A stretch of DNA of 64,000 nucleotides from contig OZ251223.1 of NCBI GenBank assembly GCA_965240325.2, forward strand, positions 3,038,001 to 3,102,000. Direction: 5' to 3'. The DNA is from Rebecca billardiae RCC1528. Its lineage: Eukaryota; Protista; Haptophyta. Made by a program: the position numbers and the translations under genes. Positions within the stretch are counted from its first letter, which is position 1, and each line of letters starts with the position of its first letter. Shown in pieces: positions 4,763 to 62,416 of this stretch. Under the pieces are notes generated by a model, which was given only the letters and a program-made list of their open reading frames with translations, ran no database searches and was not told the DNA's origin.

Positions 4763-5154
4763 CTCTCTCTCTCTCTCTCTCTCTCTCTCGAGTTGGTAGT
4801 CCCCTCTGCTCGGTGAGGTTGCTGCTGTCAGCGCCTCCGCCCTGCAGCGCCATACCGCAGCCGCGTCGTCGCTCGTCCGGCATCACATTCTCGTCCAGCA
4901 GCTCACGTGCTGCCGCGTCAGCTCCGCGGCGGCGGTTCACTGTTCACGGGCGCCCTCTCGACCACGGGCAGCTGCGCCTCCGCACTGCCCGCGCCTGCGT
5001 CGTTCGTTGGTAAAATCCCGACCTATATGTAACATGGTCGTTTCCCGCAATCATGATCATCGTGGACTGTCTCAAGACGCAGTTCACGCCACGACCATCC
5101 AGCTCTCGGTCGTGCTCGACGCTTCGAGCGAGCAGGGCATGGCGGAGTGGTTAG

Positions 5155-5199
<45 letters not shown>
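4763..5199. repeat. About 365-bp non-coding segment bracketed by (CT)n on the left and (CA)n(GA)n on the right
   Basis: Microsatellites at 4763-4789 and about 5155-5199. Contains the 13-mer gattttaccaacg (minus strand), also present in the 6852/8801 inverted repeat arms. Confidence 0.6.
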
Positions 5200-5203
<4 letters not shown>

Positions 5204-5562
5204 GGCGTACACCTCCTGTGTGCCGAGCTCACAAGAGTGGTCGGAGGAGAGTGTAGCGTGCGGTGTCGTGGGCCCCCTGCCCGAGCTCGGCGCCTTGTGT
5301 CGGGACGCCCCCGTACCTTGGGCCGAGCCGCACTGATCGAATAAACAAGAATCGCCGAGCAAGTCCTGCAGGCGGTGCCCGGTGCCGACCGGATTGGCTG
5401 CCGAAAAGGGGTCCGACCAGGACTGCGCGCGCTGGGCGGGCTGGTTGATGATGCCAAGCGAGCCGGATCTTGGTGTCGCTCTTAGACACTCAGTTATTGT
5501 GCCAATCACGCCACATAGCCATTAGTATATCAGTAGAATATATGATGCGCTGACATCATCGC

Positions 5563-52523: not shown

Positions 52524-55500
52524 CTACAAGTACGACGACTGATGAACTGCTGACGACAGCAAAATGTTCTCGATCGCCGTGCGCACCGCAGCTTCCGCTT
52601 CAGCGGCAGCAGCAGCAGCGCCCTCGACGGCTGCCTCTGCCTCGTCGCGTGCAGCCGTCGCGCGGTCGACCACCGCCTGTGCCGTAGCGAGCTCCGCCTC
52701 GGCCGCCCCCGCGACGCTCAATGGCGTGCCCGCAAGCCGGCGCTCGCGTGTCGCGACGGCCGTGCAGTCGTCGGCGACGCCTCGCGCGTCGGCGAGCGCG
52801 GCCGCGTCCGCCTCGGCCCGTCGCTGCGCGGTCTCGGCCGCGCTCGCCGCGTCGGTCGTACTGCGCTGCAGCTCCTCCTCCTGTGCCAGCAGGCGCGCGA
52901 GCTCCGCGCGCGCTGCGTCGGCTTTGGCCTGCGCGTCGCGTGCCTTCTCAGTCGCGCCGGCGAGCGCCGCGTCGCGGGACTGGCCGATCGGCAGCGTGTG
53001 CTGGTTCGAGCGGAGCTTGGCGAGCACGGCCAGCTCAATCTTGAGCGCGGCCTCGCACCGGTCGCGCGCGCGCCGCGCGGTGGCGATCTCGCCGCGCGTG
53101 CTGTGCCACTCCGCCTGTGCGCGCTTGGCGCGCTCGGCCGCCGCCTGCGCGCCCGTGCGCGCGCCCTTCACCGAGAGCTCGAGCGCACGCGCGGCCTCCG
53201 CCGTCTGCGCTTCTCGCGCGAGCGCGGCCCTCGCGCGCTGGAGCACGGCGCCGTAGCCGCGCTCGACCTCGGCGAGCTTGGCGGCGCGCGCGTCGCGCGC
53301 CTCCGCGGCCGTGGCGAGCTCGCGGCGCGCAGCGGACGCGCGCTCAGCCGCGCGCCGCGCGGCCGCACGCAGCGGCTCCGACCTCTTGCGCTCGGCCTCG
53401 GCCAGCGCGAGCGCGCGCACCCGCGCGAGCCGTGCGCGCTTCCTCGCGCGCGCGCGCCGCAGCCGCTCCAAGATGAGCTGGCGCGCTCGCTCCTCGTCCT
53501 CGCCGAGTGCCGCGGCGATCAGCGCGCGCTCGACGCGCACACGCGCTGCTTCGAGCGAGTCATCCGCGCGCGCCGCGCCGAGCAGCGCGCGCTCGACCGC
53601 CGCGCGTGCCGCCTCGTGCGCGTCCTCCCTCTGCGCGGCCGCGAGCAGCTGTGCCTCGATGCGCTCGCGCGCAGCCAGCGCAGCCAGCGCCGCGTCCGCC
53701 GCGCGCGCCGCAGCGATGAGCTCGCCCTCCGCGCGCGCGCGCGCTGCTTCGCGCGCGTCGTCCGCGCGCGCCGCGTCGAGCAGCGCGCCCTCGATGCGCG
53801 CGCGCGCGGCGTCGAGCTTGTCCTCGGCGGCAGCGGCCGCGAGCAGAGCCGACTCGAGCGCTCCGCGCGCGGCCTCGCGCGCGTCCTCGGCGCGAGCTGC
53901 GGCGAGCAGCTCGCCCTCGAGGCGGGTGCGCTCCGCCACTGCCGCCTCGGCTGCGGCGTCAGCAGCCAGCGTGGCCGCCTCCGCCTCCGCTGCCGCCACC
54001 GCCTCCGCTGCAGCGGCAGCAGCCTCCGCCTCCGCCGCCCTCGCCTCCGCCGCCTCCGCTGACGGCTCAGCCTGGGCCGCGGTCGGAGCCGCCGCCGCAG
54101 CATCCGCCGCCGCCGCCGCTGGCCCACCTGCCGCCGCTGCCGGTGCCTCCGAAGCCGGTGGCCCGAGTGCCGGCGCCTGCGCCGCGGCCGGCGCGTCCTC
54201 CCCCGCTGGCGCCGCACTTGCGGACGCCACCGGAGCCACCGCCCTGCCGAGCTCCGCCGCAGGGGCGAGGGCAGCCAAGCTGTCCGCACCGCGGGGCGCC
54301 GGTGCGGGCACGGCGCGTGTGGGGCTCAGCGGCGCAGGCGCGGCCGACGTGGGTGTGGCTGGAGCGCCAGCGAGCAGCGGAGCAGCTGCGGGCGCGAGCC
54401 CGAGCGTTTCGCCCTCCGCATCGCGCGGCGCGCCCACTCGCGCCGCGGGGGCCTCCCAGCCCGCTCCCTCGCGCTCCTGCGGTGGCGACACGAGGCCGGC
54501 GGGCGCCGCGGCCTCGGCTGCCGCGAGCTCGGCAGCGGCGAGGACGGCCGCGGCGGCGGGCGCGCTCACGCCGTCGGCCGCGGGCGCGCCGGCGATCACC
54601 AGCGACACCTCGCCGCTGGCCAGCCTGCGCCTGCCGGCTGCGCCCATCGCGCGCCCACCCGCCGCCAGCCCTCTCGCCGCACGTACCGCGCCGCCAGCCC
54701 TGCGCCAGCGCGCGCGCGCGTGCGCGGCCGGCCGGTGCGTTGGGAGCGCATGCGCGCTGCGCGCATGCCTGCCGCGCGCGACCCGCTGGATCGCGACGGC
54801 CGCGAGCCACGGGGCGCGATCGCCCGCACGGCGCAGCCGCGCGCGCTCGCGCGCGCCGCGCGCCTCGTGCCGCGCGAGCAGCCCGCGCGCCGCAGTCTGC
54901 AGGGCGCGCGCCGCCGCCGCGCGCCTCGCCGCCTCCGTGCTCGCGAGGTGGCGGCGGAAGGTGCGCTGCACCGCGAGCGCGGCGCGGCGGCGCTTGAGCT
55001 CGAGGCGGCGGGGCGTCACGGCGTCGAGCCTCGCCGTGGGCACAGCGGGCGGCGCGCGCAGCCGCTCGAGCCCGCCGCGCTTCGGCCCCTCGTCCATCAC
55101 CCACGCGCGCACCCGCCGCCCATCCGAGGCCGTCAGTGTGACCATGCGGACCGAGCGCGCGGCGTTGCTGAGCGCGCCCGCCGCGCACTCGAAGAGGCCG
55201 TCGTCCGGGCTGTCGAGCAGCGTCTCAAGCTCGCGCAGCGCACGCCGGTCCCGACGCAGCGCGACGATCCCATCCGCGCTGACGCACGTGACCTGCGACG
55301 CAGACCCCAGGGCACGCGGCGGGGCGGGGGCGCGGCACACGCGCTCACGTCAGCGCGCGTGCTCGCGCTGGGGGGCGACCCGGTCGAGGGCGCGGGCAGC
55401 GCGGGCGGTGCGCGCGCGCGCGCGCGCACGTTTCGAAGCGCTGCCACGACGTAGTACCGCGCCCGACCCGACGCGCCCCGGTCCGCCAGCGCGGCCAGAA

Positions 55501-56187: not shown

Positions 56188-59100
56188 TCAGAAGAGCGCG
56201 GAGCTGCGCGACCCATGGCCGGCGCCGGGCGCGTGTAGCCCACGCAATCGTCGCCGGTGGCTCGGCGCTTCGTGCCCAAAGTCGATGAGGCCGGCGATGT
56301 GCCGCGGCACGTCGAGCGCGCGGCGCAGCTGGCTGCCGAGGTCTTGCATGCTCACCTCCTCGTGCACGCCCTCGCGCAGCGGCACGGCGAGCGCGCCAAA
56401 CACCGCGTCCGCCACGCGCGCCGCGCGCACTTCGGCGGGCGCCGACATGAGCACGTGCCGGAACTCCGCGGAGAGCGGCAGGTCAGGCTCGTCGAGCAGC
56501 GCGCTCACGATCGGCACGGCGTGCGAGTCCGGCGCGGCGTGAGCGGGCGGTTCTCTCGCGGCCTCGGCGTCGGCGCCCGTGCCGGCGGCTGCGCTCACGG
56601 CCGCAATCAGCGCCGGCACGAGCTCGGGCGATCGCGGCCACGTGACGAGCAGCCGCTGGGCGCGGCCGCCAAACGGCTTGCCGACCAGTGACGCTCTGGT
56701 GACGCGCCTGCCGATCACCGACGGGCGCCCGCCGTGCGCGCTGCCGACGACGTGCGCGGGCGCGCGCGGCAGCTGCAGCAGGTCCAGCTCGAGGTCGCGC
56801 GCGATGTGCGCGAGCGGAATGGGCGTGGCGACGGGCAGCGAGAGCGCGCGCTTGTCTGCAAGCACGTGGACACGCACGAGCGCTCGGCTCTCGAGCCCAC
56901 GCAGCTCCGGCCAGGCCGCGTCCGTGGCCGCGTCATCCTGCTGGCGCACACCACCAGTGGCGGCGGCGGCAGCCGTGCCGGCCGCGCCGCCGTGCCGCAC
57001 GGCGCGCCGTGCGTTCGCCCGCATGTGCGCGAGCGACTCCGCGGCCGCGGCGGTCGAGCTGTCGAGCGCGCTCAGCAGCGTGCGCAGCTGCGCGGCCGTG
57101 TCGAGCGCGCACCCGTACCCAAAGGTGTCGGCCTGCAGGAGCAGCAGCAGCGCGCTCGGCGCGGGCGCTGCGGACGCTGGCGCGCGCGCGCCGGCAGGCG
57201 TGCACTCGGCGAGGTGCGTGCTGGAGAGCGGCACGACAGCGCGCGCCGCAGCGGCCGAGCGCGCCGCCCCCTTATCCGCCCGCGCGGCCGAGCCGAGCGC
57301 GGCACCCGCCTCACGCGCGGTCGCGCGCAGCAGGAGGTGCTCGCTGAGGAGGCCGTGGACCAGACTGCGCAGCGCGTCGAGCCGCGCGGCGCTGGCCGAC
57401 ACCACGCGCGCTCCCTCGCCCATGCGGGCGGCCCCGGTGCCCAGCTGCAGCGTGTGCGCGCGTGCGCGCCCAGCCACGCCGTGCGCGCTCGGTGCCGCGA
57501 CGGGCCGCGCTGGCGGCGGGTCGAGGGAGCCCGCGGCTCGCAGCACCTCGGCGATCGCGACGAGCGTGGCGTCGAGGTACGCTCGCTCGCGGCGCCACGG
57601 GATCGGCTCGCCCGCCCACACGCGCCCGAGCGCGCTCGCGCCCTTGGCCTCCGAGCCTACCGGCGGGAGCGGCAGCGCGGCCTCGGATGTGCGCCGATGA
57701 TGGCCGAGCGCGCTCGGCCGGCGCGCGGGCCCTGCTGGCCGCGCTGGCTCGGGCGTGGGCTCTGGGAAGAGCTGCTCGGCGGCCGCAGCCACGAGCTCGT
57801 CGCCGCACGCGCGGCACGCGGCGCGCAGCTGCGCAACACTCACCGCGCCGTGCAGCGCGCTCGTCTCGTGCACCACCGCGATCGGCAGCGCCGCCTCGAG
57901 CGCCGCCCTGACCTCCCTCAGGCAGTTGCCGGAGGAGAAGAAGCCCTCGGAGAGAAACAGCACGACTGCGGCGGAGGCGCGCACGGTCGCCTCGAGCTGG
58001 CCGAGGTGGGTGAGCGAGTCGACGTCGAGGAAGACGCGCAGCCCGGGCAGGAGGCCTTCGAGCTCCTTCTTGAGCGCCTTCGCCTGGTCCTGCCCCGAGC
58101 GCCACACCTGCGCCCGCGCGCGCGCGTTGTGCCGAGGAGCACGGCACGGCAGGGCAGCGCGGGCGGTGGTGAGCGCACGCGCGCGCGGCGCGGGCGGCGG
58201 CGAGTCGCGGGGCGCGGCGACGCCCAGCGTGCGCTCCAGGCCGGCGCGCGCGTACGTGTGAGATGAAGCAGTGGTACTGCACGTGCTCATCCCGGCCACC
58301 GGTGTCCGCCCTGCCCGCGGCCGCCCTGCTCGGCTTCAGGCCGGACGCGCCGGCAGCGCCGACGCCGCCGGCTGAGCCGGCCTGCGCGTAGTAGTTTGCG
58401 GGCTGGAGCGGCGCCGCCACGACGCGCTCGCCCGACTCGGCTGCGCGCAGCACCACCTGCAACCGCTCGCGCTGGATCTCGTACGGCACGATTGCGATCG
58501 CTGCGAGCGCGACCACCGCGACCGCCGCCGTGAGGAAGGCCCCCAGCGACTTCTCGTACAGCAGCGTGCGCAGCGCGTCTGCGCTCAGGCTGCTCGCCGG
58601 CTGCTCGGGGGTGGGCGCGCGCAGGTCGTCGATCGCGGTGTCGTCCGCGGTGAGGTGCACGCACAGCGCGCCGACGAAGACGAAGAGCATCGCCACGTGC
58701 GACAGCAGCAGCACCGCGTTGTTGTCCGCCGAGTTGAGCGGCCGCACCCACGCGACCATGAGCGCGTGCACCGTCTGCAGGAAGAGTGCGCACAGCAGCT
58801 GCGTGAACGTCGCGTACTCGGCCGCGCCCTCGTGCGCGTGGCTGATGCCGGCGATCGGCAGCGACCAGGCGCGCACGATGACGATGCCGCCGACCAGCAT
58901 CGCCTGCCGCGCCGCCTCCACCGCCTCCCACCAGATCGTCTCGACTCGATACCCGACGCCCAGCAGCCGCACGGGGCTGAGCCCACCCAGCGGCCCGCGG
59001 CGCAGCAGCACAAACAGGAGCAGCGGCAGCGCGGCCGCGTACAGCAGCGAGCCCACCGCGGCGAAGGGGAGGTGGCGCGCGTGCTCGGCCGAGTCGAAGC

Positions 59101-62100
59101 GCACGCGGTAGTCCGTGCGCAGGTACAGCGGCGGCGGCCACGCCTCGGAGTCGACCGCCTCCGTGTTGAACGCGGCGAAGAGGCTGGCGGAGGCGGTGGG
59201 CAGCACGAGGTACGCGCACAGCAGCACCGGACGCCACACCGCCTCGCTGAGCGAGAGCCTCGGGTCGGCCGAGCCGGCGGCGTGGTCGACGGCCGAGCGC
59301 GCCGCGCCGCGCGCAGCCGATGGCAGCCAGCGCGCGCGCGCGCGCGCCCAGAGCACGTGCACCGCCCACGCGCCGCCCGCGAGCGCGAGCACGAGGAGCG
59401 GCGCGAGCGCGAGCGGGTAGAGCGCCTGGTGGTACCCCTGCCAGGGCAGGTAGCATGAGAGACCGTGCACGTACAGCTTGTCGAAGCTGAGCGCGCTCAG
59501 GCGCGAGAGGAGGCGGCGGAACGAGCGCGGCAGCCGCACCGAGTACACTGGCTGGATCAGCAGCAGCACCTGCGCGGAGGAGAGGAGCGAGCGGCCCGCC
59601 ACCTTGGCCGACGCGACCGTGCGCGCGCTCCACGCCTCGCGCACCAGCCGAGTTGCCGCCCAGCCTCCGCCGTGGGACGCGGCGTCACGGCCGTGCGCGC
59701 CGGACGCGCCCAGGCGGCCCCACACGCGCTCAGCCGCGCGAGTGTGCCACGCCACCGCCCACAGGATGCCGCAGAGCACCGGCATCGTCGCGATGAGCCA
59801 GCGCGAACGCGCGCTCTGCGTGCACGGCACGCACTGGCCGTCGCGAGCCTCGTACAGACCACCGAGGCAGCCCGCGCAGTACGGACCGGTCCGGCCGGGT
59901 GCGCACAGCCCGTCGGCGGCCGTGCTGCGATTCGAGCTCGCGCCGACGCACGCACTCGGGCCAAGCAGGCAGCGCCGCACGTCGGCGGTGTCTGCGCGCG
60001 CACGCCACCAGCCGGGGCGCACGACCATCGTCTCGACCGTCGTGCCGACGGGGCAGTCGGCCGAGCTGTTGCACGCGTAGCACCGCCGCGCGCCGCCTGC
60101 CTCGACCCGCTCGAACGTGCGGGCCGGGCACACGCACTCCGCAGCGGACGAGGCACCGAGCACAGCCGTCGTCATGTGCGCGTCGAGGAGCTCAGTCGAC
60201 GCGCAAGGCACGCACCGCTCCCGCCCTGCGGCCGGGCGGAAGCTGCCAGCCTCGCACGCGTGGCACACGTCGCCGATGCGCTCGGCGCCCGCGGGGCACG
60301 GCGCCCGGTACTTGAACACGCCGCGCAGCGTGGTCTCGTCCTCGGCTGCAAACGTCCGCTTCGGCGGCGCGTGGCCTGGCGACACGCCCGTCTTCAAGTG
60401 GCCGGGCCCCTGGCTGCCGGAGGGGCCGGCGTGGTCGTGTGCGATGGACGTGCCGATGGCGACGCGCACGTCGAGGGGCTCGCTGAGGTCGCCGCCGGGG
60501 GCGGCCGAGGCCGCCGGCGGCACGACGCACCAGATGAATTTCATGGACATCCTGCCCTGCTGCGTGCACGGCGCGGCACCGGCCCACACACGCAGCTCAT
60601 CGCACGGCGGCGCGCACGCGGTGCTGCCGAAGCCGAAGCCACTCACGATCAGCACATCCCCGCCAGCGGGCTCGAAATCGTCTGCGCGCGGCAGCAGCTC
60701 GAGCAGCTCGAGCTCGCGCGCCTTCGTCGGCGGCGACGGCGGTGACGTGACGATCGGCTTGAGCGCGGAGCACGGCACGTTCCACATCGCTTCCACGCCC
60801 TGGCGCACGCTCTCTAGCCTGACCACGCACATTGCTGTCAGGAGGTGCACTTCCATCACCTCGGCGGGCAACTGTTGATAGCCTGGTAGTTCCACGAAGA
60901 CGTAGGTGCCCAGGGGAAAGGGGTCGAAGAAGGGCCCAACGCGCCCCTCGGGCAGGCCCCGCAGCAGCTCGCCGCTGCCTGTCAGCTGCACGTCGTACGT
61001 GAGCGCGCTGTGGTTGCGCGAGGACACCCACGCCTCTGCGAGCCCGCCGTCGTCGAGCACGACGCGCACATGCTCGAGCAAGAGCTGCGGAGGCGGAGAC
61101 AACGGAGGTTCGAGACCGCCCGGCGGTGGTGCCGCCGGCGGCGGCGCCATCAGCTCCACGCCGTCGAAAAGCACCCACGCGGTGCTGTCATCGTAGTACG
61201 TGATCTTGTACCTGCCTCGCCCCGCCAAGACCTCAGAGACGGTGCCCTCAAACTTCACCTCGCGATTTTGATTGTACGGCCATTCGGCCATGACACGCGT
61301 GCCGACCGGGAAGGGCTCGTACTCTCGCCGCACACGCACCATCGGCAGCCCCAGCAGCACCTCGCCGCTGTCGAGCCGCACGTCATACTCGCGCGAGCCC
61401 CGATCGTGAGCGAGGACGTCTCCGCCGGACGACTGGCCGCTGTCGAGCTCGACCAGCACGCGAGTCCCGTCGTCGAAGAGCATGGGCGGCAATGGCGGCG
61501 GCGAGAGCGGCGGCGGCGGCGGCGGGGGGGGGGGCGGCGGCGCCGGCGTCTGCACATTGACCCAGCTGTCTGGCACGTCAGAAGAGACGGTGCCATCCTG
61601 CTCCCACTCGATCGTGTAGGTCCGCTCGCAGAGGTGCACGCCACGCACCCGCCCGGCCCACTTTGGGGTAGGGCTCCCCTGCGGTGGCCAGCCTGCCATG
61701 ACCGGCGTGCCGACGGGGAGGGCGTCAAAGTATGGGCACACGAGAGCCGTGCCGACCGGTACATGCTCATGCTCGCGCCGCACACGCACCATCGGCAGCC
61801 CCAGCAGCACCTCGCCGCTGTCGAGCCGCACGTCATACTCGCGCGAGCCCCGATCGTGAGCGAGGACGTCTCCGCCGGACGACTGGCCGCTGTCGAGCTC
61901 GACCAGCACGCGAGTCCCGTCGTCGAAGAGCATGGGCGGCAATGGCGGCGGCGAGAGCGGCGGCGGCGGCGGCGGCGGGGGGGGGGGCGGCGGCGGCGCC
62001 GGCGTCTGCACATTGACCCAGCTGTCTGGCACGTCAGAAGAGACGGTGCCATCCTGCTCCCACTCGATCGTGTAGGTCCGCTCGCAGAGGTGCACGCCAC

Positions 62101-62416
62101 GCACCCGCCCGGCCCACTTTGGGGTAGGACTCAACTGCGGTGGCCAGCCTGCCATGACCGGCGTGCCGACGGGGAGGGCGTCAAAGTATGGGCACACGAG
62201 CACCATCGGCACGTCTCGCACCACCGTGCCGTCACCCAGCCGCACCGAGTAGGTGAGCGCGTTGTCGTCGCGCGAGGACACCCAGCCCTCAGAGACCCCG
62301 CCATCGTCCTGTCGGACGAGCACGTGCTGTGATGAACCCGCCCAGGCTGAAGCCGGCGGAGGCGGTGACGTCGACACCGCCACAGCGAGCAGCAGCCCGG
62401 TGATCGTCGCCATCAT
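56188..62416 (-). CDS. Large multi-pass membrane receptor-like protein: signal peptide, Tudor-like repeats, IPT/TIG, Cys-rich (GCC2/GCC3-like), about 7-8 TM, cytosolic TIR domain
   Basis: Exons 62416-58256 and 58107-56188 (intron 58255-58108, in frame). The spliced TIR reads YHCFISH|VWRSGQDQA..LK..L....PGLRVFLDVDSL..LG.LE..V.AS..V.LFLS.GFF.S.NCLREV. Confidence 0.85.
61326..62200. repeat. Near-identical in-frame tandem duplication of about 420 bp (period 450-456 bp) within the receptor ectodomain
   Basis: 61326-61744 matches 61776-62200, differing mainly in the poly-Pro codon run and a few substitutions. Confidence 0.95.

Follow-up and report, generated by a model that had tools for sequence, protein, structure and literature searches.

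Whether a unicellular alga carries surface receptors that signal through a TIR domain is the question raised by a gene of the haptophyte Rebecca billardiae RCC1528. The gene lies in a 64,000-nucleotide stretch of contig OZ251223.1 (assembly GCA_965240325.2, positions 3,038,001 to 3,102,000), which is called the window here and to which coordinates refer unless another contig is named, and it occupies positions 56188-62416, wholly on the minus strand. A first-pass annotation had described its product as an analogue of the Toll-like receptors (TLRs). Our analysis suggested that the gene is a good receptor candidate and not a new kind of system. The reading that we favored, with a probability of roughly 0.6, is that of a nine-pass receptor-type protein of the plasma membrane, in which a constant chassis carries a variable ectodomain and the output would run via Glu-dependent chemistry of the TIR domain on nicotinamide adenine dinucleotide (NAD+). 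Cleavage of NAD+, a ligand and an immune role are what we infer.

The gene is intact and consists of two exons encoding about 2026 amino acids, which bears out the earlier estimate of a single gene of about 2000 residues. Exon 1 begins with the first ATG, at 62416, and ends at a GT donor right after the His codon of YHCFISH, the segment containing the strand A motif of TIR domains (F-I/L-S-H/Y); exon 2 begins with VWRSGQDQ, and the junction is read as the direct joining of the two. The intron between them shifts the frame, so that the TIR domain is complete only once it is spliced, as had been proposed in the first-pass annotation. This gene model was supported by the paralogs, which were sought in the whole genome (72 Mb, 41 contigs, the window lying on contig 3) and of which eleven loci (L001-L011) were compared in detail. 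The intron-less paralog L003 (contig 10) runs through the junction without a break, as YHIFISHVWSTGQDQ, while introns at the same position were found in L001, L002, L004 and L005 (227, 191, 148 and 162 nucleotides, respectively), with GT(A/G)CGC donors and CAG acceptors.

The G+C content of the region is 68-78% and each of the six frames has long open stretches, as is the case for every frame of DNA this rich in G+C, and the tail of the protein is Ala-rich and of low complexity. These properties would allow the gene model to be an artefact, with frames kept open by base composition in what are really two genes, one for a membrane protein and one for a small TIR protein, or in a decaying pseudogene. 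This explanation is already largely refuted. The conserved position of the intron, the read-through in L003, and the presence of the membrane block and the TIR domain in one uninterrupted frame in five paralogs (L003, L005, L007, L008, and L009) make it very unlikely, and the same arrangement was found in proteins outside the genome, including an annotated gene of E. huxleyi. Moreover, neither a stop nor a frameshift was found in the 2026 codons, and the segments of the exon 2 tail that are conserved with the paralogs all lie in a single frame. In L002 (positions 5000-5220), one loop of the membrane block contains an in-frame VCACVCAC... run, a GT/CA-type microsatellite. This run probably represents an in-frame intron left unspliced, a sign that introns can be concealed in the open frames of this DNA.

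The TIR domain was recognized with the TIR_2 profile (PF13676), for which the curated cut-off is 28 bits. Exon 2, which was searched separately from exon 1 and not as part of the joined protein, matched profile positions 10-78 with 24.1 bits (E 5.5e-05). The score was under the cut-off because strand A sits in exon 1, and L003 read straight through scored 30.2 bits. The TIR domains of the paralogs were 50-63% identical to that of the window gene. When the family TIR profile was compared with solved structures, the best matches were C. elegans TIR-1 and SARM1 (E 6e-4 and 8e-4) and, after these, Roq1, RPP1, and ADR2, all of which are NAD+-cleaving TIR proteins; the sole exception in the list was an unrelated protein matched through the non-TIR columns of the profile. 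The family profile was needed for this result, as the exon 2 TIR searched as a single sequence gave only chance matches among solved structures. In the profile search, the Glu of the family LRE motif (NCLREV) aligned with the catalytic Glu of HKEL in TIR-1 and SARM1, in agreement with the earlier claim that the catalytic residue is retained. It was kept in the window gene and in L001-L006, that is in seven of the ten loci with this TIR subtype, and in 11 of the 11 outside relatives aligned, so the conservation among paralogs that had been predicted stood for most members and failed for L007-L009. The insertion of about 50 residues before strand E was read as a loop since no canonical donor-acceptor pair was found in it. 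No match to exon 2 was found with PADLOC.

A different role of this domain has to be considered at this point. The TIR might be a scaffold and not an enzyme, and on activation it would engage further TIR proteins through TIR-TIR contacts in the way that animal TLRs engage their adaptors. Partners could exist, given at least 18 TIR_2-like loci in the genome, and L007-L009 swapped the Glu for Gln with the remainder of the domain kept, which implied that catalysis is not required of every member of the family. It is also established that the Glu is conserved in the TIR domains of scaffold-type TLRs (discussed in 10.64898/2026.04.20.719644). The scaffold explanation nevertheless seemed unlikely to us, considering that the closest solved relatives found by the profile are enzymes and that the Glu was kept in most of the paralogs and in all outside relatives aligned; no MyD88-type adaptor was encountered either, although no search was aimed at one.

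The TIR domain follows a membrane block whose AlphaFold2 model, built with 38 aligned relatives, consisted of nine long helices (predicted local distance difference test score, pLDDT, 79.5; predicted template modeling score, pTM, 0.80). Eight helices were clear in the hydropathy profile, and the ninth is an amphipathic segment missed by hydropathy and present in the model; the earlier count of about seven to eight hydrophobic helices was therefore too low. The block was 25-47% identical to those of the paralogs. Its profile, searched against 1.84 billion representative proteins, matched 4939 proteins at E<=0.001, of which only 10 were at E<=1e-30, and among the 43 top matches Ephrin_rec_like was present in 14, PF06011 (Pfam TRP) in 8, and TIR_2 in 5. 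When proteins were searched by words of the membrane region, no relatives were obtained, as Ala-rich words filled the list of 8000 candidates. No convincing relative of the block model was found among solved structures (Foldseek best E 0.2; VIA-align best Z 8.4, with designed helical bundles, at noise level), which implied that the block is neither a recognizable G-protein-coupled receptor nor a canonical six-helix TRP channel.

With the signal peptide cleaved and nine passes through the membrane, the C-terminus would be inside the cell. The charges flanking the helices were biased in the same sense, with 21 Lys/Arg residues on the predicted inside and 12 on the predicted outside, against 10 and 14 Asp/Glu residues, respectively, and the TIG-like and Cys-rich parts of the ectodomain contain 21 Cys residues, which also favored this topology. 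The model and these features together point to a type-I-oriented, nine-pass protein with the TIR domain inside, consistent with the multi-pass core and the cytosolic TIR of the first-pass annotation.

The nature of the block suggested a further explanation, in which the block would be the working part, an ion channel or transporter of the fungal Pkd2/Flc type (PF06011) used in mechanosensing, adhesion, mating, or self-recognition, and the TIR domain would modulate or report its activity without being part of an immune sensor. Besides its occurrence among the close relatives of the block, PF06011 was weakly matched in one outside protein with both block and TIR (P0174). The layout of the window protein, in which a signal peptide and an outside domain precede nine predicted helices and a tail in the cytosol, recurs in Pkd2 of S. 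pombe and in fungal Pkd2/Flc proteins in general (PMC6727746; 10.1101/2022.08.11.503631), and stretching of the membrane makes S. pombe Pkd2 permeable to calcium (PMC9727806). In addition, the FG-GAP, MAM, TIG, and lectin domains of the paralogs are also found in adhesion proteins. On the other side, the block showed no recognizable pore or selectivity motif, no solved structure resembles its model, and four of the PF06011 matches among its relatives, re-scanned singly, scored 20-27 bits, under the cut-off of 28.5 bits. The fungal proteins differ from the window protein in their ML-like outside domain and in the lack of a TIR. Membership of the gene itself in PF06011 was rejected, with no match at E<=1 in exon 1 and none at the locus or at the paralogs genome-wide. 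The block thus appeared to be Pkd2/Flc-like in layout only, and a channel as the working part is, in our judgment, rather improbable.

The receptor-type reading also drew support from the family as a whole. Exactly ten loci in the genome, the window included, have this TIR subtype, and in all of them the block comes before it, with neither order nor orientation varying. The order common to the ten was a TIG-like and Cys-rich region, the membrane block, the TIR subtype, and a C-terminal module. Outside these shared parts, the ectodomains differ (LRR, C-type lectin, MAM, FG-GAP/RTX, and TIG; Table 1), and this set fits what would be expected of a receptor repertoire, in line with the comparison of paralogs that the first-pass annotation had suggested. 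L007-L009 are three almost identical copies of a diverged member on three contigs.

Relatives outside the genome had a comparable composition. P0002 (1589 amino acids in one open reading frame) contains LRR, Ephrin_rec_like, the block, and TIR_2 at 29.1 bits, and P0005 contains the block, LRR_1, Ephrin_rec_like, and a weak TIR_2 match; P0003 and P0174 had only the block and weak TIR_2 matches, apart from the PF06011 match of the latter. In EMIHUDRAFT_221124 of E. huxleyi (XP_005756777.1), the block (hhalign probability 98%, E 1e-13) is directly followed by the TIR (WHLFLSHVW).

In L010 and L011, an inosine-uridine nucleoside hydrolase domain (PF01156) stands in the place of the TIR domain. These hydrolase-bearing paralogs hint at a linked nucleotide pathway. 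A more far-reaching picture, which we regard as speculative and doubtful, is that of a pattern-recognition repertoire of the haptophytes' own, in which swappable ectodomains on a Pkd2/Flc-like channel-type core would gate a cytosolic TIR NADase and the sister genes, as XopQ-like nucleoside hydrolases, could process or quench the nucleotide made by the TIR. Such a system of receptor, channel, and enzyme would resemble neither the TLRs with their single pass nor the soluble NLR/TNL types.

Glu-bearing TIR domains act when they are brought together, and they then cleave NAD+ or make signals of the cyclic ADP-ribose (cADPR) type. In the receptor-type reading, the chassis would consist of the IPT/TIG-like domain, the Cys-rich ephrin-receptor-like region, the nine-helix block, the cytosolic TIR_2-type domain, and the C-terminal module, with the outer domains swapped among members and, in the window gene, formed by four Tudor/SH3-like pairs on proline-rich stalks. 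A ligand or a surface contact on the variable ectodomain would alter the packing or the oligomeric state of the membrane block, by which the cytosolic TIR domains would be brought together and could act on NAD+ via the conserved Glu, leading to depletion of NAD+ or to an ADP-ribose-derived signal. Activation by oligomerization, as well as a role in the sensing of microbes, viruses, or other cells, is a proposal. Many eukaryotic Glu-bearing TIRs make cADPR isomers, and a green-alga TIR was active too (preprint 10.64898/2026.04.20.719644).

Several points weigh against this reading. The TIR_2 score of the window gene is below the Pfam cut-off, and solved structures were matched weakly (E about 1e-3). 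The near-identical L007-L009 have Gln at the Glu position. Loop 2 of the nine-helix model has five basic residues on the predicted outside. Finally, the Glu is necessary and not sufficient, as the Glu-retaining TIR domains of TLR2, IL-1R9, and IL-1R10 were inactive in assays (10.64898/2026.04.20.719644).

The positions of all features are collected in Table 1.

Table 1. Features of the window gene (window positions) and of its paralogs (contig positions where given)
Feature	Position	Strand	Description	Basis
Exon 1	58256..62416	-	1387 amino acids; signal peptide, ectodomain, nine-helix membrane block, juxtamembrane linker, TIR strand A (YHCFISH)	Open frame and motif positions
Intron	58108..58255	-	148 nucleotides, GTACGC...GCGCAG, GT..AG; cuts TIR between strand A and WxxGQDQ segment	
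Exon 2	56188..58107	-	639 amino acids (56191-58107) and stop (56188-56190); remaining TIR and C-terminal tail	Open frame
Signal peptide (predicted)	62336..62416	-	About 27 amino acids, hydrophobic core ITGLLLAVAV, then ASA	Inferred by reading the sequence
Four pairs of Tudor/SH3-like small barrels	60737..62335	-	Poly-Pro linkers	Tudor_5 and atlas matches, weak
Tandem duplication	61298..62200		456-bp unit, 2.0 copies, 96% identical	Tandem Repeats Finder, score 1682
IPT/TIG-like domain	60437..60709	-	GGDVLIVSGFGFG ... IWCVVPP	Homologous segments in L004 and L002
Cys-rich ephrin-receptor-like region	59813..60319	-	17 Cys in 169 amino acids	PF07699
Nine-helix membrane block	58481..59812	-	Conserved in paralogs and thousands of other predicted proteins	AlphaFold2, profile search
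TIR domain, helix A to helix E	57523..58107	-	Insertion of about 50 amino acids before strand E	TIR_2, paralog alignment
Catalytic-position Glu codon	57913..57915	-	E of NCLREV, exon 2 residue 65	Aligned to TIR-1
Ala-rich middle of tail	56659..57522	-	Mostly low complexity; conserved LLLLLQADTFGYG motif at about 57147	Low-confidence prediction
Conserved C-terminal module, fold unassigned	56302..56658	-	LLVTWPRSP ... VPIVSALLDEPD ... LAVPLREGVHEEVS	
L001			Outer domain LRR	Pfam
L002	contig 26		Outer domains C-type lectin and TIG	Pfam
L003	contig 10		No outer domain recognized	Pfam
L004			Outer domains FG-GAP, RTX repeats, TIG	Pfam
L005			Outer domains MAM and beta-helix	Pfam
L007	contig 18:127500-137400		Diverged copy, Gln at Glu position	
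L008	contig 35:466500-476400		Diverged copy, Gln at Glu position	
L009	contig 14:1409000-1418900		Diverged copy, Gln at Glu position	
L010	contig 12:1684000-1693900		Cys-rich region and nine-helix block, PF01156 (31.4 bits) replacing TIR	
L011	contig 7:1386000-1395900		Cys-rich region and nine-helix block, PF01156 (35.3 bits) replacing TIR	

The ectodomain is modular, as had been noticed in the first-pass annotation, and its signal peptide, Tudor-like and poly-Pro part, IPT-like domain, and Cys-rich part could all be located. The Tudor-like part rested on a weak Tudor_5 match in exon 1 (Pfam, E 0.018) and on a protein atlas, in which all best matches to this region were Tudor/Agenet families (feature score 0.83), a lead and not a proof. 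Within this part, the ectodomain has recently expanded through the 456-bp tandem duplication, by which one Tudor-like pair was doubled along with its poly-Pro linker. No LRR was matched in exon 1 with Pfam.

The 290 residues that follow the Tudor-like region, comprising the TIG-like and then the Cys-rich part, were 33-40% identical to the paralogs. No Pfam match to IPT/TIG was obtained in the window protein itself; at the homologous position, TIG was matched with 26.4 bits in L004 (cut-off 20.9) and with 18 bits in L002. Similarly, Ephrin_rec_like (PF07699) was matched at exon 1 residues 718-761 with 22.7 bits (E 8.3e-05), below the cut-off of 23.1, and it exceeded the cut-off in paralogs. An insertion of 33 residues between the two parts was read as a loop since no plausible in-frame splice pair was found there.

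The C-terminal module was 27-38% identical to the tails of the paralogs, and it also matched a compact second domain that outside proteins, among them an MMETSP transcript, have after the TIR (hhalign probability 70%, E 4e-5). For the tail, AlphaFold2 gave a model (pLDDT 46) too poor for a structure search. The first-pass annotation had seen a second, degenerate TIR in this tail. The motifs on which that proposal was based are present and conserved, but a profile comparison of the tail with the TIR gave a probability of only 0.5%, and the proposal found no support. MAFFT had placed fragments of the tail on TIR columns, which was judged an alignment artefact. Next to the gene, a long minus-strand open frame (52524-55340) codes for a product that is rich in Ala, Glu, and Arg, resembles a coiled coil, and has IQ-like motifs in its first part.

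Comparison with known systems showed that the general kind, a membrane TIR of a haptophyte with the conserved Glu, is already described (PMC12489294, 2025). In Gephyrocapsa (Emiliania) huxleyi, for which that paper treats 15 genes, genes for Glu-bearing TIRs with an extracellular region and/or several membrane helices before the TIR are switched on early in virus infection (PMC12489294), and EMIHUDRAFT_221124, with the membrane block directly before a TIR that is 47% identical, is public. The earlier view of an uncharacterized algal system therefore held only in part. The published account of G. huxleyi names no further domains and does not describe the nine-helix block, swappable ectodomains, the C-terminal module, or hydrolase paralogs (PMC12489294), and in our literature search the nine-helix block as a common core, the set of swappable ectodomains, and the hydrolase-bearing sister genes were not found described.

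The likeness to animal TLRs, which had given the gene its first description, stood as an analogy of layout. Both have an ectodomain outside and a TIR inside and belong to families of varied ectodomains, and LRR occurs in L001, P0002, and P0005. However, TLRs have a single helix and an LRR horseshoe, whereas the window gene encodes nine helices and no LRR, and the closest relatives of its TIR, a domain of the TIR_2 type, are SARM1 and TIR-1 and not the TIRs of TLRs. SARM1 and TIR-1, the best solved relatives of the family profile, share the aligned Glu; the similarity is weak, and SARM1 is a soluble ARM-SAM-TIR octamer without membrane block or ectodomain. TirC of Dictyostelium, a TIR NADase, is likewise a protist TIR tethered to the membrane, and removal of its predicted membrane anchor unleashes toxicity, but its only hydrophobic helix is N-terminal, it lacks an ectodomain, and its TIR came from bacteria in a recent acquisition (PMC13142454).

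TIR domains have come to be regarded as immune modules of ancient origin that process NAD+, and how they are switched on in unicellular algae is almost unstudied. The family described here is compact and well defined, with ten loci in one genome, and its relatives come from Emiliania huxleyi as well as from marine metagenomes and transcriptomes. One membrane-plus-TIR chassis combined with very different ectodomains, and one recent internal duplication, is what a repertoire of receptors would be expected to show when the pressure from ligands changes. The family thereby offers constructs for asking whether bloom-forming haptophytes sense viruses, bacteria, or grazers at their surface and answer with NAD+-derived signals.

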